A stretch of DNA of 64,000 nucleotides from Orbicella franksi (GCA_964199315.1 OZ116702.1:18166001-18230000); one strand, 5' to 3'. Numbered from the stretch's first letter, positions 438 through 58,966 are shown. Notes: generated from the letters alone by a model not told the origin. Numbers and translations: made by a program.

Positions 438-1721
438 TAACAACAAGTACATGAAGTCTCATGATGACAAAGCACCTTCAAAATACATCATGTATCTCGA
501 CGCAAACAATCTGTACAGTAGGGCTGTGAGCCAGTATCTACCAACTGGTAATTTCAGATGGAAGAAAATCGAAAAACTTGATATATCAAAGTATGAAGAA
601 GACGGTAAAAAGGACTGACTTTAGAAGTTGATCTCGAATATCCAAAAGAGCTGCATGATCTTCATAATGATTATCCTCTTGGACCTGAGCACGTGAATTT
701 AACTGAAAATATGTTGTCAGAGTATTGTCAAAAAATCAAGAACAAATACAACATATCAATTGGACAAGTAAAAAAAACTGATTCCAACCTTGAGCAAAAA
801 AATAAATATGTTCTTCACTATTGAAATTTACAATTGTATATGGATTTAGGATTAAAACTAACCAAAGTACATTGAGCATTAGAATTCAATCAATCTCTAT
901 GGCTGAAACAGTATATCGACTTCAATACACAAAAAAGAACTCAAGTGAACAATTCATTTGAAAAAGATTTCTTCAAACTAATGAATAATTCAGTATTTGG
1001 AAAGACGATGGAAAACATTCGAAAAAGAGTAGATGTGGGACTTGTAACTGATAAAAATAAACTATTAAAAATGTCATCGAAAACCGACTTATATATCATC
1101 AAAAATATTCAACAAAAATCTTATGGCAGTACATTAAAGATCAAAGAAACACTAACCCTAAACAGGCCAGCATATGTAGGTATGTCTATTCTTGATCTCA
1201 GCAGGACATTGATGTATGATTTCCATTATAATTATATCAAACAAAAATACAGTAACAAAGCAAAATTATTATTCACAGACACAGACAGTTTAACATATGA
1301 AATAGAAACAGAAGATGTGTATGAAGACTTCTGGCAAGACAAAAATAAATTTGACAACAGTGATTATAATAAAGATAGTAAATTCTATGATGAAACAAAT
1401 AAAAAAGTCATCGGTAAATTCAAGGATGAAGCAGCTGGTGCAGTTATAAAAGAATTTATTGATTTGAGAAGTAAAATATATTCATATATTAAAGACAATA
1501 ACGAAAACAGGAAGACAGCCAAAGGCATCAAGAAGATTGTTATAAAAAAGGATATTCAATATGACGATTATAAAAACACACTATTCAATACCTAGCAGAT
1601 GTACCACAAAATGACAGCAATTCGAAGCGATACAGGAAGCTATGAGCTCAACAAAGTATCACTGTCATACTTCGATGATAAGAGATTCATACATACTTGT
1701 AATAATAGAATAACAAGTTAT
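438..1721 (+). pseudogene. Polinton/Maverick-type family B DNA polymerase, C-terminal part, frameshifted
   Basis: PolB motifs YLDANNLY, KLMNNSVFGKTMEN, FTDTDSL, IGKFKDE spread over several frames (ORFs 394..618, 945..1595) with stops and frameshifts. Confidence 0.85.
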
Positions 1722-3136
1722 TCCTATCAACTAGATATATATACACGGTATTAAACAATAGGCTAATTGCTGGACTAGTTGCATTACAATAAGTGATAGT
1801 TATACTGGAAAACAATAGGTGTGAAGACAGAAACTACGGGGACGAGTATAAACTGCGTGGGTGCAGTACAATATAAAGAAAGTGTCAAGCGCTCTTCAAG
1901 TAGAATTTGTTCTCGTGCCGGCATTTAGAAATAAGTTCTGATCTTTTGTTTAGTAGATTGTCGTTGCTATGTTTGATAATCATTAGTTTTTCTGTGAGGC
2001 AGAGGTCGCATCGTTTGGAAATGTTGTTGTAGGGTCTTGCACGGCTAATAATTGACCATTTGATGTTGAAGTCTTGTTTTTTGTCGTGTAGTTGCCAGAT
2101 GTATTTAGAAAGCTCGGTGCTGTTGATGTGTTTTCTGTGCTTAAATGTGGATTTGTGCTGCGAGAATCTCTGTTTGAATGTTCCTTCTGTCAGTCCAATG
2201 TAGTTCTTGGTTGTGTTGTTAGTTGTAACTTGTGCGTTGTAGATTACACTGGAAGTCAGGCATTTGTTGTCTAGCGGGCATTGGTCTTTTTTGCGGCAGT
2301 TGCATTGCTCTCCGGTGATTGCGTTGGCGTTGTTGTCGGCGTTTGTTATTTTCATGTTGTGTTTGTTGATTACTGTTTTCATGTTGTCCATGCAACTGTA
2401 GCTGACTTTGACGTTGTTTTTGTTGAAGAGGCTGTGGTATTTATGTTGGTTCGGAAAGTGCTTAGATATGAGCTTCAGGAATGTTCTACCGATGTTTGTC
2501 TTTACGTTTTTACTAAATGGAGGGTTGTACCATATAATGTTTCTTTGTCTGTTGCGTCGGGGGCGTGTTGGTTGATTGTCTTCGTTGTAAATTAGTGTTT
2601 CAGAGTATCCGCTGGCTTTCAAAGCAGTTTCGTAGATTGGTTTGGCCTTGTTGAATTCGTGTTCGTTGCATGAGTTGGCGGAAATACGGCGATTGATGGA
2701 TGCTGGAAGTTGCTTTATTATGTTAGGTGGGTGGTTAGACTTTGTGTTGATGTACTGCGGCTCGTCGTTAGGCTTTCTGTAGGGGCAGTAGGTACCTTTT
2801 GTAAGATCGAAGGTGACGTCCAGGTAGTTAACAATTTTCATGTTAGTCTGTATGGTAATGTTAAGTCCATATGTCTTGAAGCGTCTTGTTATGTCCTTCC
2901 TTGTACGGTCTGCTTGAGGTCCGGAGATGTTTTTGAAGATGGCAAGTCCGTCGTCTCTGTAAAGCCCGATGTTGTCTATCCCGTATATGTTACACAGGTC
3001 GTCGAGAATGAATAAGCCTACGAGCTCGCATACTTCGGCTCCGTCGAAGCTGCCCATAGTAACGTCAAAAGAACTGTTGTTTTTCTTGATCCAGGCGGTG
3101 TTACTGTCAAAGAGAAGGGATTTTCTTGAATGCATA
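1720..3136 (-). repeat. Inverted copy of the 3' 1.4 kb of the Penelope element (ORF 1885..3162)
   Basis: Reverse complement of 3664-5080; the translations differ only at YIG/YTG and LKSA/LKNA. Confidence 0.95.
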
Positions 3137-4915
3137 TTCATACCCGCTGACAAAACAACCAACTACTACGAAGTAGACAAAGCTTCGCACGACAAGCTTC
3201 TCAAGGACAATATCACATCGACGTACAAGAAAGCAAATTCTAATACGATTACTGCTATTAACAAAGAAGCTCAAGTCATTGCTACTAATCTGAACATTGA
3301 CGACCGCGCGGAACGCATGGCTGAACGACAGGCTTTTATAACACTCAAAGACCATAAAGACAACTTCCAGAACAAACCTACATGTAGACTCATTAACCCT
3401 GCAAAAAGTGAGATTGGACGTATCAGTAAAGAAATCCTCGCGAACATTAACACGACTGTGAGACAGAAGACTGGCCTTAACCAATGGAAAAACTCATCAT
3501 CCGTCATCAACTGGTTCTCCTCTATACAACACAAAGATCAACATACCTTCGCCGTATTTGACATTGAGAACTTCTACCCTTCCATTACTGAGAAACTTCT
3601 TACAGACGCAATCAACTTCGCCAAACAATTCACTTCCATTACGGACCGCGACATCGATATTATTATGCATTCAAGAAAATCCCTTCTCTTTGACAGTAAC
3701 ACCGCCTGGATCAAGAAAAACAACAGTTCTTTTGACGTTACTATGGGCAGCTTCGACGGAGCCGAAGTATGCGAGCTCGTAGGCTTATTCATTCTCGACG
3801 ACCTGTGTAACATATACGGGATAGACAACATCGGGCTTTACAGAGACGACGGACTTGCCATCTTCAAAAACATCTCCGGACCTCAAGCAGACCGTACAAG
3901 GAAGGACATAACAAGACGCTTCAAGACATATGGACTTAACATTACCATACAGACTAACATGAAAATTGTTAACTACCTGGACGTCACCTTCGATCTTACA
4001 AAAGGTACCTACTGCCCCTACAGAAAGCCTAACGACGAGCCGCAGTACATCAACACAAAGTCTAACCACCCACCTAACATAATAAAGCAACTTCCAGCAT
4101 CCATCAATCGCCGTATTTCCGCCAACTCATGCAACGAACACGAATTCAACAAGGCCAAACCAATCTACGAAACTGCTTTGAAAGCCAGCGGATACTCTGA
4201 AACACTAATTTACAACGAAGACAATCAACCAACACGCCCCCGACGCAACAGACAAAGAAACATTATATGGTACAACCCTCCATTTAGTAAAAACGTAAAG
4301 ACAAACATCGGTAGAACATTCCTGAAGCTCATATCTAAGCACTTTCCGAACCAACATAAATACCACAGCCTCTTCAACAAAAACAACGTCAAAGTCAGCT
4401 ACAGTTGCATGGACAACATGAAAACAGTAATCAACAAACACAACATGAAAATAACAAACGCCGACAACAACGCCAACGCAATCACCGGAGAGCAATGCAA
4501 CTGCCGCAAAAAAGACCAATGCCCGCTAGACAACAAATGCCTGACTTCCAGTGTAATCTACAACGCACAAGTTACAACTAACAACACAACCAAGAACTAC
4601 ACTGGACTGACAGAAGGAACATTCAAACAGAGATTCTCGCAGCACAAATCCACATTTAAGCACAGAAAACACATCAACAGCACCGAGCTTTCTAAATACA
4701 TCTGGCAACTACACGACAAAAAACAAGACTTCAACATCAAATGGTCAATTATTAGCCGTGCAAGACCCTACAACAACATTTCCAAACGATGCGACCTCTG
4801 CCTCACAGAAAAACTAATGATTATCAAACATAGCAACGACAATCTACTAAACAAAAGATCAGAACTTATTTCTAAATGCCGGCACGAGAACAAATTCTAC
4901 TTGAAGAACGCTTGA
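3137..4915 (+). CDS. Penelope RT-GIY-YIG ORF (5'-truncated, open)
   Basis: RT motifs FDIENFYPSI, MGSFDGAEVCELVG, LYRDDGL; endonuclease VIY...Y(T)G, RF.QH, with CNC-x5-C and CDLC cysteine motifs. The true element frame starts at about IFIPADKT. Confidence 0.88.
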   Translation, partial: FIPADKTTNYYEVDKASHDKLLKDNITSTYKKANSNTITAINKEAQVIATNLNIDDRAERMAERQAFITLKDHKDNFQNKPTCRLINPAKSEIGRISKEILANINTTVRQKTGLNQWKNSSSVINWFSSIQHKDQHTFAVFDIENFYPSITEKLLTDAINFAKQFTSITDRDIDIIMHSRKSLLFDSNTAWIKKNNSSFDVTMGSFDGAEVCELVGLFILDDLCNIYGIDNIGLYRDDGLAIFKNISGPQADRTRKDITRRFKTYGLNITIQTNMKIVNYLDVTFDLTKGTYCPYRKPNDEPQYINTKSNHPPNIIKQLPASINRRISANSCNEHEFNKAKPIYETALKASGYSETLIYNEDNQPTRPRRNRQRNIIWYNPPFSKNVKTNIGRTFLKLISKHFPNQHKYHSLFNKNNVKVSYSCMDNMKTVINKHNMKITNADNNANAITGEQCNCRKKDQCPLDNKCLTSSVIYNAQVTTNNTTKNYTGLTEGTFKQRFSQHKSTFKHRKHINSTELSKYIWQLHDKKQDFNIKWSIISRARPYNNISKRCDLCLTEKLMIIKHSNDNLLNKRSELISKCRHENKFYLKNA

Positions 4916-5095
4916 CACTTTCTTTATATTGTACTGCACCCACGCAGTTTATACTCGTCCCCGTAGTTTCTGTCTTCACACCTATTGTTTTCCAGTATAA
5001 CTATCACTTATTGTAATGCAACTAGTCCAGCAATTAGCCTATTGTTTAATACCGTGTATATATATCTAGTTGATAGGAATGCTTATCATTAAATA

Positions 5096-5135
5096 CTGTC
5101 TGATGAGTGCGTAAGCACGAAACTCGGAGTAACAG
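5096..5135 (+). ncRNA. Minimal type I hammerhead ribozyme in the Penelope 3' repeat
   Basis: Stem I CTGT/ACAG, CTGATGA (5100-5106), stem II GTGC-GTAA-GCAC, GAAA (5119-5122), short stem III ACT-CGG-AGT, GUA cleavage triplet ending at 5131. Confidence 0.88.
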
Positions 5136-5231
5136 CAAATCTTGCCTCTTCGTTATTACTCATATACTCAGCTCTACACTATATGTGTATTGAGCACTAT
5201 TTTAATGGGATCTGCTACTTCCTCATATGGT

Positions 5232-5275
5232 TAGAATAACAAGTTATGCGTATGGACATTATAAAACAGAGCAAA
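5232..5275 (+). pseudogene. Last codons of the same polB, displaced by the Penelope insertion
   Basis: Reads RITSYAYGHYK and joins 1706-1721 through the duplicated TAGAATAACAAGTTAT. Confidence 0.75.
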
Positions 5276-6104
5276 AGCCTCTTTACTGTTATATTTTATT
5301 TTCTAATACGTCAGAAAAATTTTCATTGCATGACTCATTTCCAAGGGAAAGTCCCGCTGATATGAGATCATCAACTTCTTGTCTTTCTGAGAATGTCTTC
5401 CAGTCTTTCTGAGAAATGTCACGCAATAGTGTAGATGGGTGGTATTGAGATGGGCAGTATCAAGTCATAGTGAAAATGGTCTCATACCCCCATCTCCTAT
5501 ACTACTCCCATTCAAGCTTGAATTTTGCAGGCTTTTCTTCACAGCTCCTTAAGCTGTGCTAATAACTGTGATGATCATTCATGTCTTTACATCTTTCTCT
5601 GCAGTTCAAATGGTAATTTTACTTGTAAAATAGAGGTAACAACTTAAAGCGTTGCATGGATATCACACATGTGTATCATTCCTTCAGTCATACTATACTG
5701 CAAATCAATGTTTGACTAGGTTTAACAACTGTCAACACTTGTGGTTAAGTCATGAAAGACATTTACATAAGCAGACATTGCTCTTTGATGTGCGTGAGAT
5801 AAATATTATTTTGTCCTTAGAACTACAATAACAATTACGTTCAACAAGAATAATTGTGATCTATTCATTTCTTTGCCTTATATGCTTGATCCCGGTTTCT
5901 GTCGGGATGCAGACAGCCTAAACAAAACTCTGTTATTATGTGTAATGGATACAAGATAAACGATATCAAGTTATCATTTATAATTACTGCTCACCTGTTC
6001 TCATACTGAGCAACGCCTGGTGCTGTCATGACTCTCACTAGTGCAAGTAGCTAGTTTGCGATTTGTCTGTATTTTCCCCGCCCATTATCAATAAACAGCT
6101 GGAC

Positions 6105-6362
6105 TACAGGGTTGGGTGCACACCTGCCACTTAGCTTCTCACGTAGCAGGCCACCTGAGGCTTATATCTATCCGGGTGTGGCATGCGCCACTTTCATTGG
6201 CTCATCCCTTATTGCCAGGTGTGGCACACGCCACACTTGTTGGCTCATCCATCACTTGCAGGGTGTGTTGCTACCACTCCTATTGTCATGTACCTATTTA
6301 CAGGCTGTGTTGCCGCCACCCTTAGATTTACCAGGGAGCACCCAACAACCTTAGTCCCATTT
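6105..6362. repeat. GC-richer island with an internal direct repeat, possibly a DIRS/Ngaro terminal-repeat remnant
   Basis: GTGTGGCA..CGCCAC...TTGGCTCATCC occurs twice (about 6175-6210 and 6220-6250); identity of the parent element is a guess. Confidence 0.25.
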
Positions 6363-6584
6363 ACTGCCAAATGGTTGTCAACTTTATTGTGCACTTCTGT
6401 AAGTGTCTGAAGTTGTTAATATGGGATATTCCATAATTTATATTCACTTGCAGTTAAGTAATTAAAATAGTTATGTGAACTTCCATCCTGGTCAAAAAGT
6501 TCGCTAGAAAATTTGTGCAGTAATGTGTATGAATATCCAATTGAAAACATTCTTTGAAATTGACATGGGATATATGACAAATAC

Positions 6585-6891
6585 CTGTCTTACTAGTAGT
6601 TTTTCTTCCATAGCTTGATATCGGCTTTCCCTTGATGTACCAGGTTTTCCATCTTCTAACCACTCCCCTTCAGATCCCTTCAGATTACTTGACAGGACCG
6701 CATCACTACTGACGTTAATACTGCTGTTCACAGACTGAGACACTTCTCCACTGTCTGCAGCTCGCTCACTTTGAATACCACCAAAACTACCAACAGAGGA
6801 ATTGTGGCCTTCTGTTTCTTTCCTCAAACGATCAAGTTCGTGCTTCATTTCACTCAGCTGAGATTCGTAGTTGTCAATCACATCTAGCACT
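6585..6891 (-). CDS. CEP70: CEP70-like coding exon (7th in window): (K)VLDVIDNYESQLSEMKHELDRLRK...YQAMEEKLL(VRQ)
   Basis: Acceptor TTCTTTCAG at 6892; phase 2 matches upstream exon end AA|; resembles human CEP70 LLCLIDYYESKI as recalled. Donor either after 6594 (GTAAGA) or 6585 (GTATTT), both phase 0. Confidence 0.8.
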
Positions 6892-8892
6892 CTGAAAGAA
6901 TGTTGACGATTATTTCACATATCATGTTATGTAAAATTAATCAAAACTTTCTATTTTTGGATATCCACGTAAAACCTAACTAATATTTTATTTTACACGA
7001 GTAAAGTCCATATATACAAGTTGCTAATTCTTTCTTACAAAACAAGATTCAAGGCATTTTATCAAAGGTTTCTTTGGAAAAATAGTTGTTTCTTCGTTGA
7101 GCAAATTAAAGCACTCAGAGAACTCAAAGAACAAACACAAGTCACGCTTTCACTGTAGAAAATTCCTTTGTGACCAGTAAAAAAAGGGAGCGAGTTTCAT
7201 CTTGGCCATTCCTGCAAAATAAATATTCACTTTTTTGGATGGCCTGATTCTTGGGTATTGGAGTACAACCTGTTTCGCACCCAATCCAGTTCGCATCCAC
7301 CGAGTTTGCACCCCTGAACTCATTAGAAACTTTGTATTTCGAGTTTGCCTTCACCTTCAATGCATTGAAGAACAACAAATAAACATCGGAAATTGGAGAG
7401 TAGACCAACGACCATTGAACCATTTGTTGTCCATAAAAGCACCATAACCAATAGCACCAGATGCATCAGAACTGACGGAAAAGTCAGGCAAAGGCTCAAG
7501 GGTGGGAAGAAGGAAAAAGGATATTCCATTCCACTGACCAAAAAGATTCTACCCACCAGGCCAAGTCCTTTCTAAACTCCACATTAAGACGTATTGGATG
7601 AGAATCATTCCGGAAACAGGACAATAAATCAATCATCCAGCGAAGAAAGGTGTGACCTGGTCAAACCACCATGCGGGCATGATGCAACCGACCAATCAAT
7701 GATTGAAGATCTTTTTTAGTACAACATTTGCGGGTTGACCAATGGGTGAGAGCCTCTTCCAAAGTAAAAAATTTATCAGCTGGAAGGCGTGCAATCTGAG
7801 CTGCTGTATCTAATTCAATTCTCAGGACCACCATGCAGGAGGCTGGACCCAAGCATTTCTGAAGGTGCAAAGGAAGACCCAACCTGGCCACCACTGCTAC
7901 AGCTACTTGAAGGTTGGAGGCACAGACCACTGAGTTTGCTGGAGCTGCCATAATGAAATCATCTAAATAATGCAACAGGGCCTCAATCCCATTGTTATGG
8001 ACCAAAATCCACTCGACCAATTCTGCAACTGAGTTGGAGCTGAGTGAAGCCTAAATGGTAAGGCGAGATCTACGTAATGAGCACTGCGCCACTTCAGGCC
8101 CAATAGATGGCAGTCCAAAGGATGAATAGAAATATTCCGGTATGCAGACTCAATATCAAATTTAGCCGTGAGGGCACCCAGCCCAAATTTAGAAACCATC
8201 TTAATAATATCATCCATTTTGATGTGCTGGAGATGCCAGGATTCTGGATCGATTCCATCGTTGATGCTGTGGCCTTGCAGCAAGGATAGGTCCACGATAA
8301 GGCGCCATTTGCCCAGCTGCCCTTTCTTAGGAATCACCCCAAAACTGCTTACGTGAAGGTTTTGCACTGGTGGGGCATCAAAAGGACCCACTACACGGCC
8401 TAGCCTGACCTCGTTAGCTAAATACACATCAATCACCCCGGAATGTTGGTAAGCGGACAATTTATTTCTTCTAGCTGAGTTCAAAGTTACAGGTTTATTG
8501 CAACCAAGTCTAAAGCCTTCCTTGATACCCTGAAAGACAAAGTTTGCCATTGCCTTATCAGCATAGAGAGTCAATTCAGCTTCAAATAACTCAAAGTTTA
8601 GTGAAGACACTTCCCTAACCGCTGGCAATGTCAAAGAGGAGCCTAGGATGAAAATAGTAATAATAACAAATTCTGGTAGTAAAGAAGACTAGAAATACGA
8701 CAAAGGATCTGTTCAAAAGGATAGAGACACAAATAGAATCAAACAAGCTAACACAACTAAAGAACGAAAACAATAATTAATTCAACTCAGTATTTAACAG
8801 GGGAACAACAAGAGCAAGACAGTTAACGGTGCTTGCTACGCTTTGGCTCCTCAGGATCCAGTGAGCGAACATGAGATGATTGTAGCACAATT

Positions 8893-10827
8893 GAAGGGGT
8901 GAGTGCAAAACCATGCTAAGTGACGATTTGGGTGAAAATAAAATTTTCGCGAAAGGGCTTGAATTTTTGCATGTGGTCTTCAATGTAATAGAAAAACGTG
9001 GCCCTGTATTTTTGTCGCTGGTTTTTGCTTCGTTTTCAAGTTATAACGTATGCAAAAATACTTGGCTTTTCCTAGCCATGTCTTTACGAGTTTATTTGTT
9101 GAACAGCAAACAGGCAGACTGTTTATAGTGTATCAAGTCAAAATCAAATCTCACAGCATATATAGAACAGAAATCTGGGAACAGATTGTTTACGTCAGGT
9201 ATTGTGACGTGAGCACAACACGTGAATCGATCAAGAGTCAAACGAAATTCATCAAACAAAAAAGAGATGTACTGCATTAGAGCTCTGCCAAGTAATATCT
9301 TAAGCATTGTTTTAAAGTGCCTTGTGTGCCTGCCCGGTGGTTGAGAGGCATCATAAAGCCTCGATAAACCCGTAAGTCATCAGCACGTTTTAAAGAATCA
9401 AAATGTGTTCTGAAACTTCGAAGGCAGCTGATATACCGTAATCGTGTTATCGGCGTTCCAAGTCAGATCGAGCCAGGCAGCAAAGTCCAAGAGCAGTTCT
9501 TGCCCAAAAAAAATACCCTCTGGTGAGTCGTGGCCCATTTGCCAAGCATTGCTAGCATCAAAGTTTGGAAAGCGAGAACTGGTTTTAGACTTACAAAATT
9601 TGTCTTGTATCAACCGCCATGTTTTCCTGCGCACGAGGTGTAAAGACCCTTCCCGACATGCATTGCGATCACGTTCTGCGGACGTTTCTCGAACTGGTAA
9701 CTAGATTGTTTAAACATAAGAATGGCCAACAAGTAGCGATCAATTGTAACATAGATCTGTGATCCAGGTTGCATTGATTTTATTTCAAATCGGCATGATT
9801 TGTAGTGTTTTGAGCTTCTGTGATCAGCGGACATGCAGATGTATGAAGACCCATACGTTGCGGAGAAGGGTTAATCTGTTAATATGTCAGCCCTATTTAT
9901 AGCGCGTTTTCACGTGAAATCAACATCATTGAGCTTATAAGTTGCGTGAAATTACCATTTTGCTGTTTTCTAAGTGAAACTAGCATCCTTGCCCTCACGC
10001 GTTAACGTGAAATCAACATTTTAACCTATTTAGACCTGAAATCAACATCATTGAGCGTATGCACTGTGTGACATTGACATTTTGCTGGTTTCTAAGTGAA
10101 ACCAACATCCTTGCCATCACGCGTTAACGTGAAATCAACATTTTAACCTATTTAGACCTGAAATCAACATCACTGAGCTTATGCATTGTGTGAAATTGAC
10201 ATTTTGCTCATTTCTAAGAGAAATCAACCTCCTTGCTGTCACGCGTTAACGTGAAATCAACATTTAAACCTTTTTTGACCTAAAATCAACATTTTTGAGC
10301 TTATACGTTGCGTGAAATTGACATTTTGCTGTTTTCTAAGTGAAATCAAAGTCCTTGCGGACGCAGCGGGCCGATCCTTTGTTATGATAAACCGAGGCGA
10401 GACTTCGACTTATAACAAAGGCTTGGCTTGGCTATTATAACAAAGGATCGGCTCTGTTTATCATAACAAAGGCCCGACTTCGTTTATTTGAAGACCTCGG
10501 CGGGAAAAGGGCATTAGGTATTTTAATCAAAAGTGAACTTTGTCGAAAACGCTCCAAATTTCGCATGCAGTTTTGTTTAGGTATGTTTAACAATGTCCCG
10601 TAGTTTTTCCACTAAGCTTCGCTTCGTTTTCGAGATATTGTGTATGCAGAAAAACCACTCGGTTTTCCTAGTGGCGTCTTTATAAATGAAGCAAAAACCA
10701 GCGACAAAAATACAGGACCACGTTTTTCTATTACATTGAAGACCACATGCAAGAATTCAAGCCCTTTCGTGAAAATTTTTTTTTTCACTCAAATCGTCAC
10801 TTAGCATGGTTTTGCACTCACCCCTTC
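8893..10827. mobile_element. Non-autonomous DNA transposon with about 140-bp TIRs and AATT TSD (Sola-like by TSD, inference)
   Basis: GAAGGGGTGAGTGCAAAACCATGCTAAGTG... at 8893 mirrors ...CACTTAGCATGGTTTTGCACTCACCCCTTC ending 10827; AATT at 8889-8892 and 10828-10831; removal restores a TAGCACAAT x3 run. Confidence 0.85.
9910..10345. repeat. Tandem array, about 121-122 bp unit, about 3.5 copies, inside the TIR element
   Basis: AAATCAACAT(C/T) unit starts at about 9918, 10039, 10161, 10283. Confidence 0.85.
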
Positions 10828-12512
10828 AATTATTAGCACAATGAAGTAGCACAATGATTGCCCCAGCACCTGCTACATGCATGGTGAAACTCACAGTGTG
10901 GATTAACTGCAATGCAAGGACCAGCATTCCAAGAATAGCAAATGACCTTACTAGAAGCATTACCAGAGGCCTCTGCCTGGGATGAGACAACACTGGATGA
11001 GGCTGGGCGAGTGCAAACTTGAGCGCCAGCTGTACGGTAGTTGAAAAGCTGAACATGCATCTTAGACCAGTCGGTGACTTTTTCTGCTGCCGCGTGCTCC
11101 CTGAAGGCCCGCTCATAGTCCAGCCAACAAAACCCACTAAATTGATGATATGTTCGGAGTTTTAAAAGCTTGTAGCTTGTCAGATCTCTCCATCGATGAG
11201 GGAAAGACGAGCAGATAATGAGATAAAAACTGGAAAAGGTTTCCATCCACGAAGCGATGTCCGTAATCAGGAGCTTCCATTTTTTAGGCGTGTGCGACAA
11301 CACTAAGTGGCCACTGAATTAAAGTTGCAGCTCCTGCTGAGGAATGGTAATGTTTTCTGCTAATAAATCTTCCAGATTCACGAACTTTCCTGCAGTGATT
11401 CAAGAAACAGCCTTGGAAAGGCATTGGTGAGTAGCCAGGGCCAACCACAAAAGGCTGTTGAAAAGGTGAGGCTGTCAGTGAGGGAACCGCCATAGGACTT
11501 ACAAATAGTTGAGAAGCAAAAACAGAATTAACTGTAGCCAGTAGGCTGTAAACCGCAGAAGAACAAGGTGCCATGGAAGACAAAACAGCCAAGGAAAATA
11601 CAGGAACGAAAGATGGGACGACAAGAGACGACAACATACCTGTTGATACATTTGCTCGCGAAGCCATTGGTACTGGAGGAGTACTGGACGAAGAAGTCAA
11701 CGGCAAAAACCCAGCAGGAGCTGATGAAGACCAAGATTGATGAAAGCTGCATGCATCCAAGTGTGCCGCATGAGTAGCAAGGGAAGAACCTTGAGCGGCA
11801 ATGGCAGGAAGGCCTTAAGAAACTGAATAAGAGTCAACCGTGGCAGATAACAACTGCTGTACGATAGCTGAAATTGAAGTTTGGATGGCCTGAATCACAG
11901 AGGCTAAAAATTCTGGTGATATGGAAGCACTAGCAGGAGTACCAGATGCTTGCACAGATGTCGACAGGGCATTAGTTGTGACTGAAATGGCGGACGCTGG
12001 AGCTGAAGACACTGCCGGCACAGAGCTATCCAAACCATTTTTAGTACGTCGAGGAGGCATGACAGCCAAGGAGATTGCAAAATGGTGAAGGAAACAGAGT
12101 GATAACTGCTGGCCAACAGCAGATCTCCCAGTTAACTCTGATTATTGATAATCTCATTTATTTAATAGTTTTGAATTCTTACTGTAGTTGGCAGGACCCT
12201 GTTGATAACAGCACTTTGTACTGAAGGGTTATCCTGGGAAAACATTCAATGAGGAAGAGGAGGAGGAGGATCATTTCCCAAAATGTTTTGTTCCTTTTCC
12301 TCTTTGGTTCAAGTATCACTCTTTCAGACCATTTACCGATCAGATTTGTGACCTACTGGCGTGCTCTCTTTCAAACTTTGATGCAAAATTGGCAACTGAT
12401 GATAAGGGCCAAACGACTACAAGTTATTGGGGTTATACTTGCAAACCAAATGGAACAAACCTAACCGGAACTTCTACCGTATAATTTCTAAAGATACTTA
12501 CAAAAAAAAGAG

Positions 12513-13239
12513 CAGTAATATAATCCGTAAAATCCAACTTTTCCAACCCTCAAGTAAAGAAGTTTTGAAGCCTTGAAACTTGCAGTATGATTTAACAGCA
12601 AGGGGAATATATTAAGCCAGGAGGAATTTATTTGGGATGGTGCAAAAGACGGATTTCACAGAAATGTGAATATTAAACAACCATTATTATATCACTTCCC
12701 TCTATTCCTGTAAGTATGTTATGTAATATTATTACTATAATATTGTATAAGATACTTACAGAAGGGAAGTAATATAATAATGGTTGTTTAATATTCACAT
12801 TTCCGTGAAATCCGGAAAATCCATCTTTTCCACCCCTCAAATACAGAAGTTTGAAGCCAAAGAACTTGCAGTATGATTTAACAGCAAGGGAATATATTAA
12901 GCCAGGAGTTCATTTGAGAGGGCAGAAAAGACGGATTTTCCGGACTTCAAAGAAATGTGAATATTAAACACCATTATTATATTACTTCCTTTTATTTCTG
13001 TATCTTATATAATATTATAATATTATATAAGATACTTACAGGAATAAAGGGAAGTAATATAATAATGGTTGTTTAATACTGTATTCACATTTCCGTGAAA
13101 TCCGGAAAATCCGTCTTTTCCGCCATCTCAAATGAACTCCTCGTGGCTTAATGTATTCCCCTTGCTGTTAAATCATACTGCAAGTTTCAAGGCTTCAAAC
13201 TTCTTTACTTTGGGGGCGGAAAAGTCGGATTTTCCGGAC
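12513..13239. repeat. Compound fold-back (palindromic) repeat
   Basis: About 230-bp module present forward, partly inverted, forward, inverted; AT-rich palindrome centres near 12735 and 13015. Confidence 0.8.
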
Positions 13240-13858
13240 TCCTAAATTTCTCTGCCTGACTGAAATAGCTTCAAATAACTCAGAGATGTTTGTACAACAA
13301 ATTGAAAGTATGAAACTTCTTGTTATGAGTGCTCATTTCGTTAAATCAGTTCAGTCTTTAAAGACTCGTACAAACAGTTTTAAACTTTTTGAAAGCAGTT
13401 GTTTACGTAGTGAATTTATGATAATCTGCTAATTTTTATGTTCGACGTGAATTAGCCTGAATGACTTGAAAACTCTCCAGAAAACACAATCAAGAAATGT
13501 GGAAAGACAAATCTATTGTTGACGTAGAAAGGCTCCCTTGATTACAGTGGTGCTGTTAGTGATTTGCATTTGACCTTGGTTCATCGTCAATGGCAAATTA
13601 GGATTGATGAGTGGCGTGAAACGCCTTCATCTAGTTGAAGTAACAAGTTCTTTTCATCCTTGAGGTGCAGAAAGGGCCCCAAAAACAAGTCCGGGGCTTT
13701 TGGGATAATTACACTACTGTTCTTGGTTCCTCGTTAACACATTTCATTAAAAAGATTATACACCAGATGAATTGCGCTTGTTGAAAAGGAAAAAGTCTTG
13801 TCACGGTAAAGAAGCCGCTTGGTTTCAGTAACACTTGAATTATTTACGTTGATCTCAG

Positions 13859-16800
13859 GTTCAATGGCAAATGACAACGGTGTCAGCTTTTCATGCATAG
13901 TAGCGGTCACAAGGTCATCAGTGAGATACCTTAACGTTCCACCTATTACATATATGGTAAGGTATGCGCCAGCTCTGTCAGATTTATTCACAAGTTTCCA
14001 TCCATGATATTTAAGCAGAAGACTTGTAGCTTTTTTACAACCAGCGATTGACAGAGGAAATGCTGCGAGCAAAGAAACCATGTCGACAGCTTAACAACAA
14101 AAAGAGCAAGAGCACTGCAATCTGTTACTTGGCTCCCGTAATCAGTGGAAGGTGCAGTGTTGTAAGTGCAAAATGCATTTGTAATGTGAAAGAAAAGGCT
14201 TTGCCAAAGGCTTGGAACTCGATTTGCCAGAAACGTGATATTTGTGATAGAGCGATTTCAGGTTTGTAAATGTTCAAAGGCTGAAATGATAGAATGACAT
14301 TGTATAACACATGTTCAATTCTTGACGCACATTATCCTACTTTCTTTCAGGTATATCAAACGTAGCGTTCTTCTTCAGTGCAATTTACACTCAAGAAAAA
14401 AAGAAAGGAAGTATCCAGGAAAGCGAAGATGAAAGTGATAACAGTAACGAAGAATTTGAATCATGCCAAGTACCTAGTTCCACTTCACAGCAGTGGCTCG
14501 ATGGAAATTTGGCTTCTGTCAACAAAGCCCTCTGCCCTGCGATTTCCTATTGGGTCACGCTAACGACATTAAATGGTGCTCCTGCAAGTACGATTTCCGT
14601 GCACAAGGCGTTATTGAATTATGGAGTAGACGTTATTGTGGATCAGGTAAAGCGTCTTGTTTAGAATGCAGACTGTTTATTTATGAGTGTACACATTGTA
14701 ACGTTTTCAAGACACGAAAGCAACACTTATTAACACTCAATTAAATAAGTTTAGTCTTAAGGAAAACAAAATACACGGCACTTAAATAAAGTGCTGGCTG
14801 TCTGGAATAACCATAGGGGCTAGAGGAGTCAGACAGCCAGTTAAAATCTTGCAAATTTCCACACAGTTTTTAAAATGCTCTACTTTATGCCTTTTAGGTT
14901 CAATTCCAAGAAGGAAAGGAATGTCCTGCCATGAAAGAGCTTTATAAAGTTTTAAAAGACCACAAAAACCAACATATGCAGGACCTCGTTCTATCATCGC
15001 ATCGGCATTGCTACAAACAAGAAGCCAGGAAAGTTATTGGCGATGATATCAGCTTGATCAGTACACAACAATTGGAAGAGTGTGGCAAAGAGAATGTAGT
15101 GCTAGTTACCATCATCAACAAGAAGTTTCAATCATCTTTGGCCAGCGTGATAGAACGCCTTATCAAGGCAAAGTTACAAATTGACAAGTTCGGATTCACA
15201 GCCTCGAACATTGCAGTGCAACCACCCAGCCCTATGGTGCAAAACGACAAGAGGTTCTCAGATAAGTTGACAATCCTGGTAAACGACATTTCCATTGCAA
15301 TGGAAAAGCTCAGTTATGCCACTTACAGGGGAAAGGTCTACAAAAAGGAAAGCAGGGCAAAGTATGTGTTTTCACACAGATGTGAGGCCCATGCGTTCAT
15401 GAATACTCTTGCCACCAATGAATTCTTCAAGCCTAGACTCATTCGAGAAATGAGAAAAGTGGTGGAGCTATTAGCCGACCCGTACTGCGAATTGTTTAGA
15501 CCACTGGTAATTGTCTATGACCTAATCAAAGTCAACCAAGGCGTCTGTTGGTCGCTAAAAGAGAGGTCCTTCATAAATGATCCTATCCAAGAAGATAAAA
15601 TTGGAAAAGTATCTCCCAGAGCGTTTCCTCCCTTTGACTCAATGCAAGAACCAGATCCAAACTACTTTTGCCAGATCCTCGAAAACAGCCTAAGTCCAGA
15701 AGAACAGTCAAACTTCTGCGAAGATTTCTTGAAGTTGCTTAGTTACAAGAAGAAGCTCAAAGATAAAGTGCCTTGTTTAGTCAGAGACGCTAACAGCGAT
15801 AAAACAAGTCTGTTTTTTCCAATCCTGGGCCTTGTGAACCACGGAAACGTTACCACAGTGACTAAACAACGAGCATTCAACAAGTCTATGATCTCTAAGT
15901 TCACCAAAGTGATATTCATAGATGAAGCTACAGAATCTACACTTGACTTCAACGACTGGAAAACGTTGACACAAGGAGGTTACTCGGCGCACGATGTCAA
16001 ATACCAGGCAGCAAAATCATTTATCAACAGATGCCCAATGATCATCACAAGCCACCGGAAGCTTGACTTCGGTCCTTCCGACCAGCCTGCAATGGACAGA
16101 CGATTGTCCACGTACGAATTCTGTAGCCTGCTAAACCCACAAGAGTGCAGCCACATGGCTAAGGAACCACCCCATGGACTGTGTACTCTGGGCCACCAAA
16201 AAGGCCAGGACACATAGAGATGATGGTGAAGAAGATCCAATTGAAACAGAGGAAGAGCAATCTTTCCTCGAAGACGGAATCTTGCAAGAAAAGGAAAAGG
16301 ACGAACTACGCGCTTTGTGTTTAGACCAGGGAGCGGACGACACCTGCAATCAGTCTGTAAGGGAAGACGAAATCCCACAAGACGCTGTGCCAGACACTGA
16401 AAGTGAGTCAGATTCATGCAGCCAATCAGGCGATATCGCAGATATCTTGGAAAACCAGCTTGGAATGCTGAAGCCAGAGTCTTTAACATAGGATAATAAC
16501 CCACATGCTGGACACAGAGCAGGAAAAGCAACAAAGACAAGTCCTGTTTGAGCAGGAGCGCTACGCTCAGCGTAAAGCCTGGTTAAAGGACAGAGGCGTG
16601 TCTAGTCAGAACGCAGAGCTTCTTCCCGAGGAATCTGACGAACCAACGCCTTCACCAATCGCAAGAGATCTCAAGAGGTTTACATGCGCCCAAACGCATT
16701 GCCAAGCTGCCCGGAAAGCCTTCGAGGGTGCGTGGCTGAAGGAGACGGAAAAAGAGTTGCAGGACTGTGTAAGGCGCTTGCACTCTACCCAACATCCCCC

Positions 16801-17287
16801 GACGAGAAATTAATTGGAGGCATACCAGGAGGTATTGGAAGATAAGCTGAAGAACCACCACAAAAACCTTGGCACGCTTGGCTCTAAAGAGGCCTTGGAG
16901 GAGTGGAGGCGCACGTGCGTCTCCCTTGGTCTACTAGACAGGGGACACCAGCATTTGGTGAAATGCATCTTTGAGGCCTTACCAACCAAAGAAGAACTTG
17001 GACCTTTGCCTACAGGTTCACAACAGGAGACAGGAGGGACACGGGCTGGGAAAGCATCAGAAAGTGACGACGAAAGAAGCTTGTTCATTACGCCGCTTCC
17101 CAGGGCTGCTCCAGCGACCTCGCCGTCGCGTGCCAGTTCAAACGCCTATGACCTGGTGGTTTTAGAGGAGTTGATGCGCAACAGCACTAGAGGTAGTAAG
17201 AGAAAGAGGTCAAAGCGTTGTGCTCACAGTCAAGTGAGTGAGAAGAGGCCTCAAAAAACTCTGCTTAATTACTTCAGTCAGAAATAG
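13859..17287 (+). pseudogene. Spliced SF3 (D5/NS1-like) helicase gene, decayed, with C-terminal PIP box
   Basis: Exons 13859(or 13829)-13956, 14045-14261, 14351-14646, 14898-17287 join in frame through GT-AG introns; Walker A relic VRDANSDKTS, Walker B VIFIDE, motif C IITS; frameshifts near 16140 and 16485, stop at 16811. Confidence 0.75.
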
Positions 17288-17592
17288 AAATTACATTAAA
17301 TAATGAAACGAATATCACTGTACCAAGCTTAGGTGCAGAAAGAGTTAAAGTTGAAGTTACGATTGACTCAACTAATTACCCAGGCAGTGAGGCCTGGGTT
17401 TAAATTTCGGCTGTTTTTTTTCCACGTTCAGTCACAAATCGCCGTCTGGTCTCTAAAGCACATGAGTCACCTGTGCATGCGTACAGCACGTGGAATTTAC
17501 AGAGGTTGTCATCAAAAAAAGTTAGCACGGATTCCATGATTTCTAGGGCAATGAAATCACATACAAACGAACACACCATTCGTACATAAAGT

Positions 17593-18101
17593 ATGGTGAA
17601 TTTTAAGCTTTATTAACTTATCACTACTCACGATGACTTCGATAGCGTTGATCCTAGCAGTATGCAGGACACCTATCATATATGAACTCAGTTAAATGAC
17701 CTTGCTCTCCATGAGTTCTTGTAACTCAGTGGATAGAGCGCCCGCCCGGTGTTCGGGAGGTCATGGGTTTGATTCCTGTCGGGGACTCAGCATTTTTCTT
17801 TGTCCCACGCTCGTGTCATGTTGATTAATTCACCTTCACATTTCATTGCCAAGCTTAAAATTCACCATCTTTATTAACCTATCACTACTCACGATGACTT
17901 CGATAGCGTTGATCCTAGCAGTATGCAGGACACCTATCATATATGAACTCAGTTAAATGACCTTGCTCTCCATGAGTTCTTGTAGCTCAGTGGATAGAGC
18001 GCCCGCCCGGTGTTCGGGAGGTCATGGGTTCGATTCCTGTCGGGGCCTCAGAATTTTTCTTTGTCCCACGCTCGTGTCATGTTGATTAATTCACCTTCAC
18101 A
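17593..18101 (+). repeat. tRNA-like tandem repeat (261-bp unit, about 1.9 copies) with a short inverted 5' junction
   Basis: Units start at 17608 and 17869; A box TAGCTCAGTGG, B box GGTTCGATTCC, then a T run; 17593-17610 is the reverse complement of 17851-17868. Confidence 0.85.
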
Positions 18102-18111
18102 AATTGTGATG

Positions 18112-18480
18112 TTATAGGAGATTAATAAAGTTGACCCTCCTCGAATTTTTAAGTCTGTGCATTTTCCCAAGCTCAGATATTCGTCGAAATATTTCGCACA
18201 AATTTACAGAGACCAGTATGGAACTGCCATGTTGGTGTACCTCCGCAGTACACCTACATTGCAGCCGGAAAATATTGTAAACATCTGGAACTTACTTTGG
18301 CTATCTAGGCAACTGATTATCTGTACTGAACAAACAAGCATTTACATGAGCACTTTTCCTAATACTTTAACTTCTAAATGGGCTAAAAATCACGAGATAA
18401 GTATATGATTTCGACAACCGCATTCGTAGGTCTATGTCACTCACTGCCATAACTATGAAATTCAAAATGTCTCGCTTGCT
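18112..18480. mobile_element. MITE-family fragment, homologous to 58570-58880
   Basis: Shared blocks ATTCGTCGAAAT...CACAAATTTACAGAG, AACATCTGGAACTTACTTTGG, GAAATTCAAAATG. Confidence 0.65.
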
Positions 18481-18847
18481 TGAGAAACGCAAATAACAAT
18501 GACAAAGGCTAAGGAAAATAGACTGAAACATTTATATGTTGATATAAAGACCTTGACTCATTTCACACCCTAAAGACTTGCAAACAAGTAATAAGCTATT
18601 AATCGATTCCAAGAAATGCAATCAAAAGCAGAATAGCTTAAGCACATCAATTCAGTTGAATTTCGTACAACTTCAAATGCAGAACATTTAGCTCAGTTGC
18701 AGTATAGCTATTGCTTCTCAGTATAATGACTGCCTGGGTACACGCAGCAAAGCGTCTAGTTGTTTAATGACTATGAGTACTTGCACTTGAAAGATGAACA
18801 GAGTGTGACGTTAAGACTGACTACTTTTGTACATGTTTGTAGTGTTG

Positions 18848-20552
18848 TTAAACTAGTGGCATTTTGAGTACAGCCCTTTTCTTGAGAGAATCTGCTGTTC
18901 TTCCCTCTTGAAATTTGAAATCGGAATCTCTCAGAATGGCCGTCCATTGTCCATATCCGTGCCTGTTCATTCCTCGCTTGAGAAAATTGTCCTCGTCTGC
19001 CATGAATTTCATCACCCGATGAAGTTTCCTCTGATTTCGCAGGTTCTCGGTGGGAATTACAACCTTCCTGGGAGGAGACAGGCTTGCCTTTTCCATAGTT
19101 TCAACCGGAAGTGTCAAGCTAGAAGTTGAACCGCCAAACCTTGCCTGTACACCTTCGTCCACTTCTGAACCCTTGCTTCCTTGAAGCTTTTGTAGACACT
19201 CGCAAGCCTTCACAGCAACTTTGTGCAATCTCCGCTTTTGATAGTGAACTTTGGCAACAGCAGAACTGTGTTTCTGGTCTTCCGACAAAATCCTTTGCTC
19301 CTTGCTGGTGAGCTGATTGAGGCTTTCCATCTCAACAATTTGGCGATAACACATAGGATGAATGTACTTTCCAACAGCATCAAAAACCAGTCTTCTCATA
19401 ATTTCACCCAATTTACTGTGTTGGCCAAGTGTTACTCTGTTGACAAGAACGAAATCACACTCGGGCTTGCGCAGCGGTCTGACATACGAGATGTAGCCAT
19501 CGAGAACTTGCATGTTTGCATCGGTCAGAATCAAAGAATCAAATCCTTACTTTCCAGCAGCCTTGAACGTTTTCTGATCAATAAATCCACCCTTTTCCTT
19601 AGCTGTAGCAATCATGTCCACCATCAAATATTGATAAGTCATGGGACGCAACCCCTTCACTTTAATGAACAGATACATGGCAACGAATTTCATGGCAAAT
19701 GTCAAGTCTGAAGGGTTGACTTGAGCTGGACTCGATTTGCAAATCTTCACGGTATTTTCATAACGCAGCAGAGGAAATTTCACCACCTCCAACAACTCCT
19801 CCGTTATTGCCCAGTGGCCTCTTGCTTCCAGTGTCTCAATGTCAAAATCTTGCATCCACTACAATGTCATCATTTTTGCAACTGTCTTTCATGCTCTTTT
19901 GAGGTACAACTCTGTTGCAGAGAACTTTCGAAGAACTGCCTCCAGCGTGCCATGAAGTTTTCTGAAGTTGATCATTTCAGAAATGGCATCTATGTAGCCT
20001 AAACGCTCACATGTCCAAGCTTGCATTCGTCTTGTAAGTAGTCGATAAACTTGAACAAATCTGGAGAACACAAACTAAAGTCCACCATGTCAAAAGTCAA
20101 CTCTTCCTCGTCTTCACAACAAAATCTAAAAAACTTAAAGCACCTTGTCTCTAATTGTTGAGCTGCACGATCTTTCTTGCAACCACCACCACTTCCATCT
20201 CATGAATACTTCAACAAAGTCACACAACAATGAAAATGAGAGAAGTAACTTTCCGGCATGTTTTGTAGTCTCACTTGTTTGATCTTGAATTGTGTTCACC
20301 ATTGGAATATTTCTTGCTACCTTTAGCAAATCTGTGATTTCTTTTGAATTGGGCTTTTCGAGAGAAAAGAACCAACTGTGCTTGGTATTAACATGTTTTC
20401 TGCACCCTCTGAATTTGAAATCCATCATGGTCACACTCTCATATTGGGCAGTGATACAAGCTGTCGGTTTCATCCTTTTCCAAGTGAAGCCATTTTGGTT
20501 TGGGTAATGCTCCATCAAAATCCGACCAATCGACTTTGCACTTCTTGCTCAT
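18848..20552 (-). pseudogene. C2H2 finger - tyrosine recombinase - Myb/SANT (telobox-like) fusion gene, decayed
   Basis: N-terminal YHCPI.ECDH...CRKHVNTKH; YR motifs KGLRPMTY (Arg), KTFK, HPMCYR (HxxR relic), HSSAVAKVHY (Tyr); C-terminal F.ADED.FLK.G..RHG.GQW.AIL.D..FKF..GRT.DSLK.R; several stops and frameshifts. Confidence 0.75.
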
Positions 20553-20837
20553 TTTGCCTTTTGAAGAGCATTTGGCCAACACGATCTCCTTTAAATCTAA
20601 ACCATAACCAAGGAGTCGATGACAAATAAAGGAACTGCATGTTTGTATTTGCCAAGGCATGCCCTTACTTGCCCGCCCTCATTACTATTGTGCAAAATTC
20701 ATGACAGTAAGATGTAACCAAACTTGCCGAAGCAGGTCTGAGTACACCTCATTGTTCGCCTTATTCACAAATGACACCATAATTTGGGAACATAATCAAA
20801 ATGCGTAAAAAATGACCCCAAATCTGTTCCCAAATGA

Positions 20838-21390
20838 CCAATTTGGGGACAATATGTTCCATTTACAGACAGGAACTCGGAACAAAACAGTCCTAAATGT
20901 CCAATTGTTTAACAAACTGTTCCATTCATAGAGGGGAATTTGGAACAAAGCGGTCCTAAAAATATCAATTTGGGAACGATATGTTCCGTTGGCATGTGAG
21001 AATTTGGAACAAAACAGTCCTAATTTACCAATTTGGGAACGAATTGTTCTGTTTACAGAGAGGAACTCGGAACAAAACAGTCCTAATTTACCAATTCGGG
21101 AACAATGTGTTCCATTTACAGAGGGGACCTTGGAACAAAACAGTCCTAAATGACCAATATGGGAACAATGTGTTCCGTTTACAGATAGGAACTTGGAACA
21201 AAACAGTCCTAAATGACCAATTTGGGAACAATCTGTTCCATTTACAGAGGGGACCTTGGAACAAAACAGACCTAATTTATCAATTTTGGAACAATGTGTT
21301 CCATGCACAGATAGGAACTCGGAACAAAACAGTCCTAATTTATCAATTTGAGAACAATATGTACCATTTACAGTTGGGAACTCAGAACGA
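20838..21390. repeat. 63-bp minisatellite, about 9 copies, each with a GGAAC-N5-GTTCC palindrome
   Basis: GGAACAAA(A/G)C(A/G)G(T/A)CC recurs at about 20879, 20942, 21006, 21069, 21132, 21195, 21258, 21321. Confidence 0.92.
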
Positions 21391-21789
21391 AATGTTCCTC
21401 TTTTACACCAGAGTGAAGGTTTTGTTCCTACATTGTAAAAAATCTGGTCCTCTTATAGTCAATAGGAACACAAAAACGAGGAACAGTCGATACTAGAGGA
21501 ACGTTCCTTTTGAAATATAGGAACAGCCAACAAAACTTAAAGTCAGCGAGAAAACGAGGCAAAGACTAAAGAAAAACTCAAAAAAGCGTAGGTCAAGCAC
21601 TTAGGTGAAATGGAAACAATATTTAAAATCTGGTGAAGTTTGTTTCACTCAAACGTAGCAAAACGTGCAATGATAAATTTTTGGGAAGTGTATAGGAGGA
21701 GGAGGACGACAACGACGACGACGATGACGACGATAATTATTATTACTAGAAGATGTTTGCTGTCTGCAAATACTTAGTTATACTTAGTT

Positions 21790-58446: not shown

Positions 58447-58966
58447 TATAGAGCATTTTTATTGTCATGCAATAAAAAATAATATCAAAAACCATTCAGT
58501 AGATAAGGTCAAGAAATTGTGATATTACAGAAGGTAAATAAAGAGGGCAGTTCTCCAAGTTTAAGTTGCATGCGTTGTCCCAAAGTTGACACATTCGTCG
58601 AAATGTTCTGCACAAATTTACAGAGCCTAGTATGGAGCCGCCATGTTGGTGTTCTTTGGTACACCAATATGGCGGCCGAAAATAGTGTTAACATCTGGAA
58701 CTTACTTTGGTTATCTGGGAAAGTGATTATCTACACTGAACAAATAAACATTAAATAAGCACTTATCCCAATACAGCAACATCTTAAACAGCTAAAAATG
58801 ACGAGATAAATACATATTTTTCGACAAACGCAATCATAGCTTTATGTCACGCACCGCCATAACTTCGAAATTCAAAATGCACTGGTACCTCTTATGCCTG
58901 ATGAGGATAACAACTTTTTAGTTTTGGATTTAAGAACGTGATGACTTCACGTGAAAACGCTCTATA
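58447..58966. mobile_element. MITE (TATAGAGC...GCTCTATA ends) nested in the TIR element
   Basis: TATAGAGCATTTT at 58447 mirrors AAAACGCTCTATA ending 58966; body homologous to 18112-18480. Confidence 0.7.

Follow-up and report, generated by a model that had tools for sequence, protein, structure and literature searches.

A two-gene tyrosine recombinase and helicase DNA transposon of hexacorals, probably of the CryptonV group

Genes and features of the Orbicella franksi copy

We analyzed a 64,000-nucleotide stretch of the genome of the coral Orbicella franksi (GCA_964199315.1 OZ116702.1:18166001-18230000), referred to here as the window. Positions 12271-21697 are a dead copy, broken up by insertions, of an autonomous hexacoral DNA transposon with two genes, in which a gene for a probable superfamily 3 (SF3) helicase and a gene for a tyrosine recombinase (YR) converge. 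The features of this copy are listed in Table 1, and related loci are designated by L numbers. An initial annotation of the sequence had recognized both genes, their convergent orientation and their decay, all of which are borne out by the open reading frames (ORFs), Pfam matches, homologues and a map of the decay. Its left boundary, at 13859, was placed 1.6 kb too far to the right, which excluded the second palindromic repeat block (12500-13240).

Table 1. Features of the element copy in the window and of its immediate flanks
Feature	Position	Strand	Description
Left flanking microsatellite	12251-12270		GAGGAA(GAG)n...GGA; final GGA common to the element spacer; direct reading; analogous flanks in other copies
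Left terminus, right-arm half of core site	12271-12279	+	TCATTTCCC, then AAAATG...GTTCC; start of homology with L001
Inverted and tandem repeat block upstream of helicase gene	12500-13240		Period about 290 bp; AATCCG/CGGATT motifs; candidate helicase-linked site
Helicase exon 1, cysteine-rich N-terminus	14060-14263	+	tblastn with L003 upstream ORF; NCBI gene models P0004, P0010 and P0013
Helicase exon 2	14341-14649	+	tblastn with L003 upstream ORF; NCBI gene models
Helicase large exon	14898-17287	+	Alpha/beta N-terminal domain, SF3 ATPase, acidic linker, helical C-terminal domain, PIP-like tail; stop 17285-17287
PIP-like motif QKTLLNYFSQK	17252-17284	+	C-terminal tail of helicase; putative PCNA binding
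Later insertion, tandem tRNA-derived SINE pair, foreign to the element	17593-18101	+	Tandem repeat, 261 bp x 1.9, 97%
Later insertion, dispersed repeat, foreign to the element	18101-18469		78% match to window 58514-58879
YR gene	18848-20552	-	C2H2-like N-terminal zinc finger, SAM-like domain, catalytic domain, C-terminal Myb; stop 18848-18850
Recombinase Myb domain, TRF1/TRF2-like	18887-19021	-	Pfam Myb_DNA-binding; PDB profile; Foldseek
GGAAC/GTTCC-rich array upstream of YR gene	20828-21540		63-bp tandem part 20828-21373; scattered sites to about 21540
Right terminus	21683-21697	+	Left arm GGGAAGTG and spacer TATAGGA; end of homology with L001; direct reading
Right flanking microsatellite	21698-21745		(GGA)3 (CGA/CAA)n...(ATT)n; direct reading

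One gene of the element codes for a tyrosine recombinase in which the catalytic set is complete and which also has a zinc finger and a TRF-like Myb domain. The YR piece in the window has 646 homologues in a representative library, the full-length ones being 560-700 amino acids long. In an alignment of 22 full-length recombinases R307, K335, R407, H432 and Y441 are invariant, and the histidine of the HxxR motif is visible in the consensus HPTRYR, outside the listed invariant columns; a zinc-finger-like N-terminal motif (CPxxxC...H....H) and the C-terminal Myb are common to all 22. An AlphaFold2 model of an intact relative has a mean pLDDT (predicted local distance difference test) of 80, and its top Foldseek matches are all tyrosine recombinases (XerA, XerD, XerH, Cre and the Tn1549 integrase), with E-values kept weak by a difference in the orientation of the two domains. 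The Myb domain of the window gives weak matches to Pfam Myb_DNA-binding; the domain also matches TRF1/TRF2 in a PDB profile search (E ~4e-7) and the Myb of TRF2 by Foldseek (TM 0.8).

The second gene contains introns and encodes a probable SF3 helicase, D5-like, with a conserved C-terminus resembling a PCNA-interacting peptide (PIP). The core ORF in the window (14931-16217) gives weak, concordant Pfam matches to the SF3 families DUF5906 and PPV_E1_C, and in the intact L003 helicase DUF5906, PPV_E1_C and Parvo_NS1 all match the same stretch; DUF5906 reaches 26.3 bits where the cut-off is 27.6, and the other two also stay under their own cut-offs. There are 215 homologues, with only stony corals among the matches listed, and one of them is named 'SF3 helicase domain-containing protein' in UniProt. 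The Walker A (GDANSGKT) and Walker B (VIFIDEA) motifs are conserved, and NCBI gene models place two spliceosomal introns in the gene. A PDB sequence profile search with the helicase gave no match. Foldseek with a low-confidence AlphaFold2 model (pLDDT 58) finds D5-type helicases of the nucleocytoplasmic large DNA viruses (giant viruses) at probability 1.0 and E ~1e-3, which is suggestive only. The C-terminal tail in the window, QKTLLNYF, fits the whole PIP pattern Q-x-x-[ILM]-x-x-[FY]-[FY]; [IL]-x-x-[YF]-[FY], which covers PIP positions 4, 7 and 8, is found at the extreme C-terminus in each of the 12 homologues that are complete at this end, and in seven of them the PIP-like motif is followed by S/T-x-Q-K/Q after a basic run. 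Binding of PCNA by this tail is plausible.

Neither gene is intact in the window. The helicase has two frameshifts (near 16141-16151 and 16481-16485) and one in-frame stop (16811-16813), and both invariant Walker A glycines are lost (15770-15800; RDANSDKT, as against GDANSGKT in relatives), so that its long open frame does not denote a working enzyme. The YR gene has one frameshift (near 20406-20410) and eight in-frame stops (at 20135, 20126, 20114, 20090, 20075, 19889, 19859 and 19547), with the H..R, H and Y motifs kept in the C-terminal piece. Two later insertions separate the genes, as the initial annotation had noted: a pair of short interspersed nuclear elements (SINEs), regarded as tRNA-derived because each 261-bp unit has a tRNA-like segment (17715-17787 and 17976-18048), and a dispersed repeat. 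Without them about 0.68 kb would separate the two stop codons, as compared with 0.2-0.5 kb in intact relatives.

Linkage of the genes, element ends and target sites

A scan of metagenomes with a helicase profile yielded 80 loci, of which 38 have at least 700 bp downstream and were counted as informative. The convergent helicase-YR pair is present in 37 of these 38, with a median gap of 416 bp, and the single exception is a truncated helicase. Intact pairs are also found. L003 has a 767-amino-acid helicase exon and a 591-amino-acid recombinase with stop codons 207 bp apart; L007 contains three intact pairs arranged head to tail in units of about 7.3 kb that are 99.5% identical; and five dispersed 9.1-kb copies in one Porites coral assembly (L008-L012) are 99.3-99.9% identical, have both genes intact, and lie each in a different gene context. 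Three helicase-recombinase pairs stand head to tail in Porites lobata (L002), and an intact recombinase of Nematostella (L006) is accompanied by a convergent helicase remnant. Locus L001 ends inside the helicase, so its downstream partner is not visible, and the contigs with the distant recombinases L004 and L005 are too short for context.

The two genes are one mobile element and not chance neighbours. Their linkage, which had been put forward in the initial annotation as an inference, holds in co-occurrence, order and common boundaries across the metagenome loci and several genera. Complete units are 6.8-9.2 kb long and contain only the recombinase and helicase genes; no capsid gene, polymerase gene or other conserved ORF was found in them, in agreement with what had been proposed from the window, and the element proteins have no reverse transcriptase match in Pfam. 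Both genes are under purifying selection, with ratios of nonsynonymous to synonymous substitution rates (dN/dS) that range over 0.16-0.55 in the helicase and over 0.09-0.18 in the recombinase (filtered pairs, which are not independent of each other). The five Porites copies moved recently as one unit, and related Porites families look recently active.

The element has fixed ends, with neither terminal inverted repeats nor long terminal repeats. The two ends are unlike each other, and a palindromic core appears only after they are joined: a head-to-tail junction has a core-type site in which 8-bp inverted arms, GGGAAACG and CGTTTCCC, surround an 8-bp spacer. This is the usual layout of a tyrosine-recombinase core, as in Cre/loxP and Flp/FRT. 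The terminus TCGTTTCCCAAAA is the same left end in Porites, Nematostella and metagenome copies. In the window the left boundary falls between GGA and TCATTTCCC (12271) and the right one between GGGAAGTGTATAGGA and GGAGGAGGAC (21697), the right terminus being built like GGGGAATGTATATGA of Porites and GGGAAACGTATATGA of Nematostella. L003 is a single copy that occupies 6559-15791 and, at both ends, an additional ATGA that the element and its flank have in common; its left flank, ending in GATGATGA, meets TCGTTTCCC, and its right end, GGGGAATGTATATGA, is followed by AGG.

Precise head-to-tail junctions are present in L002, L007, L010, L048 and L081. The direct junction in L002 reads GGGGAATG-TATATGAT-CGTTTCCC and that in L007 reads GGGAAACG-TGGATGAT-CGTTTCCC, with perfect 8-bp inverted arms. 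Joining the ends on paper gives GGGAAACG-TATATGAT-CGTTTCCC for Nematostella and GGGAAGTG-TATAGGAT-CATTTCCC for the window. L001, which is 80-86% identical to the window element, also contains three head-to-tail copies.

Each end has ATGA, AGGA or AAGA in common with its own flank, and the flank is a tri- or tetranucleotide microsatellite whose unit matches the last 3-4 spacer bases of that family. Spacers ending in ATGA are flanked by (GAT)n (L003, L006 and L008-L012), those ending in AGGA by (GGA)n or (GGAA)n (the window, L037 and L057), and those ending in AAGA or AGAA by (GAA)n or (GGAGAA)n (L015, L044, L075, L081 and L001); such spacer-matching microsatellites abut copies in every one of these loci, including all five of the L008-L012 copies. 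This agreement of spacer and microsatellite is what a crossover through a short homologous overlap predicts.

Repeat blocks and apparent module exchange

The phased array that the initial annotation had placed upstream of the YR gene consists in its tandem part of 8.7 copies of a 63-bp unit (80% matches), each unit containing a GGAAC-N5-GTTCC palindrome and further GGAAC copies. There are five exact GGAAC-N3-7-GTTCC palindromes in the window, all within the array, as against 0.25 expected. In the window, L003, L008, L007 and L006, GGAAC/GTTCC pentamers are concentrated in the kilobase leading up to the right end. The same position has exact palindromes in L001 and L002 too, and a single one in the distant L005. 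The architecture of the repeats varies, with 63-bp units in the window as opposed to a block of some 530 bp that is duplicated in Porites; what all families conserve upstream of the YR gene is the short GGAAC motif, and not the array architecture. Every family also has a conserved GTTC(C) some 17-20 bp in from the left terminus (12271-12300 in the window; L001, L037, L044, L050 and L081), so that GGAAC-type sites would flank the core on both sides of a joined circle.

Upstream of the helicase gene, blocks like the one at 12500-13240 in the window occupy the same place in L003, L007 and L008; the AATCCG motif of this block is common to the window, L003 and L008 but not to L007. In one Porites copy (L012, reverse-complemented) a further insertion of about 3.8 kb, at about 1595-5401, lies in the helicase-upstream region.

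The two modules do not have the same history throughout. Between L003 and L008 the recombinases are 94% identical, and the termini and GGAAC region 82-91% identical, whereas the helicase proteins are only 48% identical, and L003 6858-12446 and L008 (reverse-complemented) 4174-9990, which comprise the helicase module and its upstream block, have no nucleotide match. Helicase modules thus seem to have been exchanged between element lineages. The GGAAC region stays with the recombinase when the helicase is swapped, and the array would therefore belong to the recombinase module; the helicase-upstream block is swapped along with the helicase, and this palindromic block would therefore belong to the helicase module. 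The GGAAC array may provide accessory 'arm-type' sites for the zinc finger or Myb domain, or regulatory sites, and the palindromic block would be a better origin candidate than the array. In the initial annotation the array was called iteron-like; the array itself is real, but its sites may be recombinase or accessory sites, given that the motif stays with the YR module.

Classification, proposed mechanism and alternatives

As summarized in a published account (PMC8869645), the CryptonV group (Repbase Reports 2012) comprises target-site-specific Cryptons of cnidarians, some families of which insert specifically in microsatellites. A cnidarian host, a tyrosine-recombinase DNA transposon and microsatellite-specific insertion are all three observed for the element described here, whose named homologues belong to Porites, Montipora, Acropora, Oculina, Desmophyllum and Nematostella. 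Because host, enzyme and target all agree with the description, we assign the element, by the published description, as a probable member of CryptonV. The existence of this group also makes doubtful the term 'undescribed' that was initially applied to the element. The open papers searched, on Cryptons (Crypton-H, C, R and X among them) or on a recombinase with an SF3 helicase in Nematostella, make no mention of a helicase in a Crypton; the Repbase CryptonV report lies outside that scope. If the Repbase entries lack a helicase, then the gene pair, the core site, the spacer-target rule and the module swapping would be new to the open literature.

The classical Cryptons (CryptonF, S, A and I; Goodwin 2003; Kojima & Jurka 2011, PMC3212892) resemble the element in having a tyrosine recombinase, no reverse transcriptase, and neither terminal inverted nor long direct repeats. 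Short direct repeats of 4-6 bp at Crypton ends have been taken as crossover sites, and a circular intermediate has been proposed (PMC3212892). In the present element the ATGA, AGGA or AAGA common to end and flank corresponds to these short repeats. Animal Cryptons are described as having a single gene without a C-terminal domain, and a helicase is not mentioned (PMC3212892). The present element differs from them in the zinc finger and Myb domain of its YR, in its SF3 helicase partner and in its microsatellite targeting, and its YR has no DUF3504 or Phage_integrase match in Pfam.

The closest functional analogues are prokaryotic integrative replicons, with which the element shares a tyrosine integrase, a probable SF3 helicase with a DUF5906-type P-loop, and repeat arrays. 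Phage-satellite P4, islands of the PICI type (phage-inducible chromosomal islands) and archaeal integrative plasmids combine an integrase with a D5/P4-type primase-helicase and iterons. Their cycle of circle excision, replication and reintegration would have a parallel in the coral element. The prokaryotic replicons belong to another domain of life and differ in having a primase domain, none being recognized here, and in using tRNA or unique-gene attachment sites; no sequence relationship to them beyond the SF3 core was detected, and there is no PHROG match. The yeast 2-micron plasmid, which uses Flp to amplify its copy number and has neither integration nor a helicase, is similar as a nuclear eukaryotic circle with a tyrosine recombinase and inverted-arm sites (FRT) around an 8-bp spacer, the circle being a predicted form in the coral element. 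Telomere-repeat- and rDNA-specific (ribosomal DNA-specific) tyrosine recombinases are known from endogenous nimaviruses of crustaceans (PMC10871703); compared by description, these differ in residing in very large arthropod viral genomes.

We propose the following cycle. The recombinase would pair both ends and excise the element as a double-stranded circle in which the core site is rebuilt. On this circle the helicase would load at an element-borne repeat block, and its PIP-like tail would recruit host PCNA and polymerases, so that the circle could be copied, sometimes into multimers. The accessory DNA-binding domains would place the recombinase on the GGAAC palindrome array beside the core, and the recombinase would then recombine the circle core with a microsatellite that shares short spacer homology. 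Integration of a multimer, or insertion beside resident copies, would give the head-to-tail arrays that are observed. A circle that excises, replicates and reintegrates had been suggested at the outset. We infer excision as a circle and reintegration by the recombinase, in line with the head-to-tail junctions that rebuild the palindromic core and the flanks that match the spacer; that the helicase then copies this circle together with PCNA and polymerases of the host is a putative step.

A two-gene transposon of hexacorals, most probably a CryptonV, with such a putative circle and replication cycle is in our judgement the likely explanation of the data taken as a whole. More tentative is the idea of a Crypton-type circle replicated by its own PCNA-hooked SF3 helicase from an element-borne palindromic origin, with modules freely exchanged, as a eukaryotic nuclear counterpart of the integrative plasmids and satellites of bacteria and archaea; this we offer as a possibility that falls short of being probable.

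Several points weigh against this interpretation. The CryptonV link is drawn from the published description of the group. At E ≤ 1 Pfam assigns the YR to no recombinase family (neither DUF3504 nor Phage_integrase), so that its identification rests on the conserved residues and the fold. The structure model of the helicase is poor in the ATPase core; no primase, HUH, polymerase or origin-binding domain was recognized in the helicase by Pfam, PDB profile, PHROGs or Foldseek; and the canonical PIP glutamine at position 1 is absent from most family members. The differing histories of helicase and recombinase in L003 and L008 indicate a modular and not strictly co-inherited partnership. Head-to-tail copies could also arise when an element inserts next to one already in place, or through unequal exchange, and one contig that bears on this deserves comment. 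The L007 contig (ENA ERZ25070530, contig ctg131812_1.85x_c, 21,646 bp) has an assembler suffix that usually means circular, which we rejected as proof of a circle, since the contig consists of three tandem units and has only 1.85x coverage. Either an extrachromosomal multimer or an assembly artefact of a tandem array could account for it.

In the alternative that survives best, the element is the same but its helicase is an accessory factor of transposition and does not replicate a circle, transposition being cut-and-paste or repair-mediated copy-and-paste; the helicase might melt or remodel the microsatellite target or the synapse, drive branch migration, or load donor-site repair synthesis through PCNA. 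In other systems transposases commonly have an AAA+ or helicase partner, examples being MuB, TnsC and the Pif1-type helicase of Helitrons. The missing primase, polymerase and recognizable origin-binding domains agree with such a role, as does the tracking of the GGAAC array with the recombinase module and not with the helicase module, and the PIP-like tail suits repair synthesis as much as replication. However, the typical role of SF3 helicases elsewhere is in the replication of small DNA replicons, each helicase module has its own large palindromic block just upstream, which is origin-like, and precise multimeric head-to-tail arrays are easily explained by circle replication. We regard an accessory helicase as conceivable, though not as the expected outcome.

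A viral origin, with the element as what is left of an integrated small DNA virus or polinton-like virus after loss of the capsid genes, is very unlikely. The combination of recombinase and SF3 helicase is known from polinton-like viruses (PMC4642659), and viral D5-type helicases are the nearest structural neighbours of the helicase. Polinton-like viruses are nevertheless 14-40 kb long and have capsid genes, whereas the coral element exists as complete, recently mobile units of 6.8-9.2 kb with precise ends, only two genes and no capsid, and its helicase gene has spliceosomal introns. Profile scans of IMG/VR viral contigs with both proteins found no relatives, and neither the helicase nor the recombinase has a match in PHROGs.

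A Helitron was also considered. The hallmarks of Helitrons are a fusion of a Rep (HUH) endonuclease with an SF1 helicase, 5'-TC...CTRR-3' ends and a hairpin. This identity was rejected: the helicase is SF3-like, no HUH domain was detected, and the ends are TCGTTTCCC and GGGAAACG-N7. The Helitron-like end that the initial annotation had marked at 18759 is without support: none of the features that define Helitrons was found, and the position falls in the ordinary sequence between the genes of a pair that many loci conserve. The further idea that the genes are independent neighbouring repeats, perhaps split by that end, has next to no probability: the linkage is invisible in the window alone, with its two unrelated insertions between the genes, and the modules do differ in evolutionary history, but this reading is refuted by the co-occurrence and shared-boundary tests, as several genera and all but one of the informative loci agree in order, orientation and spacing, both genes lie within common ends, and the five near-identical dispersed copies carry both.

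Very little experimental work has been done on Cryptons, and the circular intermediate is unproven for the animal families. The two-gene transposon described here offers handles in its defined core site, its spacer-target rule, the PCNA-type tail of its helicase and the many intact, near-identical copies in Porites; the family could show how a recombinase picks simple repeats as safe landing sites, and whether a eukaryotic transposon replicates as an episome. For genome annotation, coral helicase and Myb genes entered as 'uncharacterized protein' are transposon genes, and some long microsatellites sit at junctions between these elements. In L001 about 1.1 kb of pure (GGAGAA)n (5905-7017) lies exactly between two head-to-tail copies, a junction microsatellite that is greatly expanded. 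The same locus contains, at 1514-5922, what may be a helicase-less derivative, in which a deletion joins the equivalent of window position ~13650 to that of 18848, and the YR gene, the array and the ends are kept.

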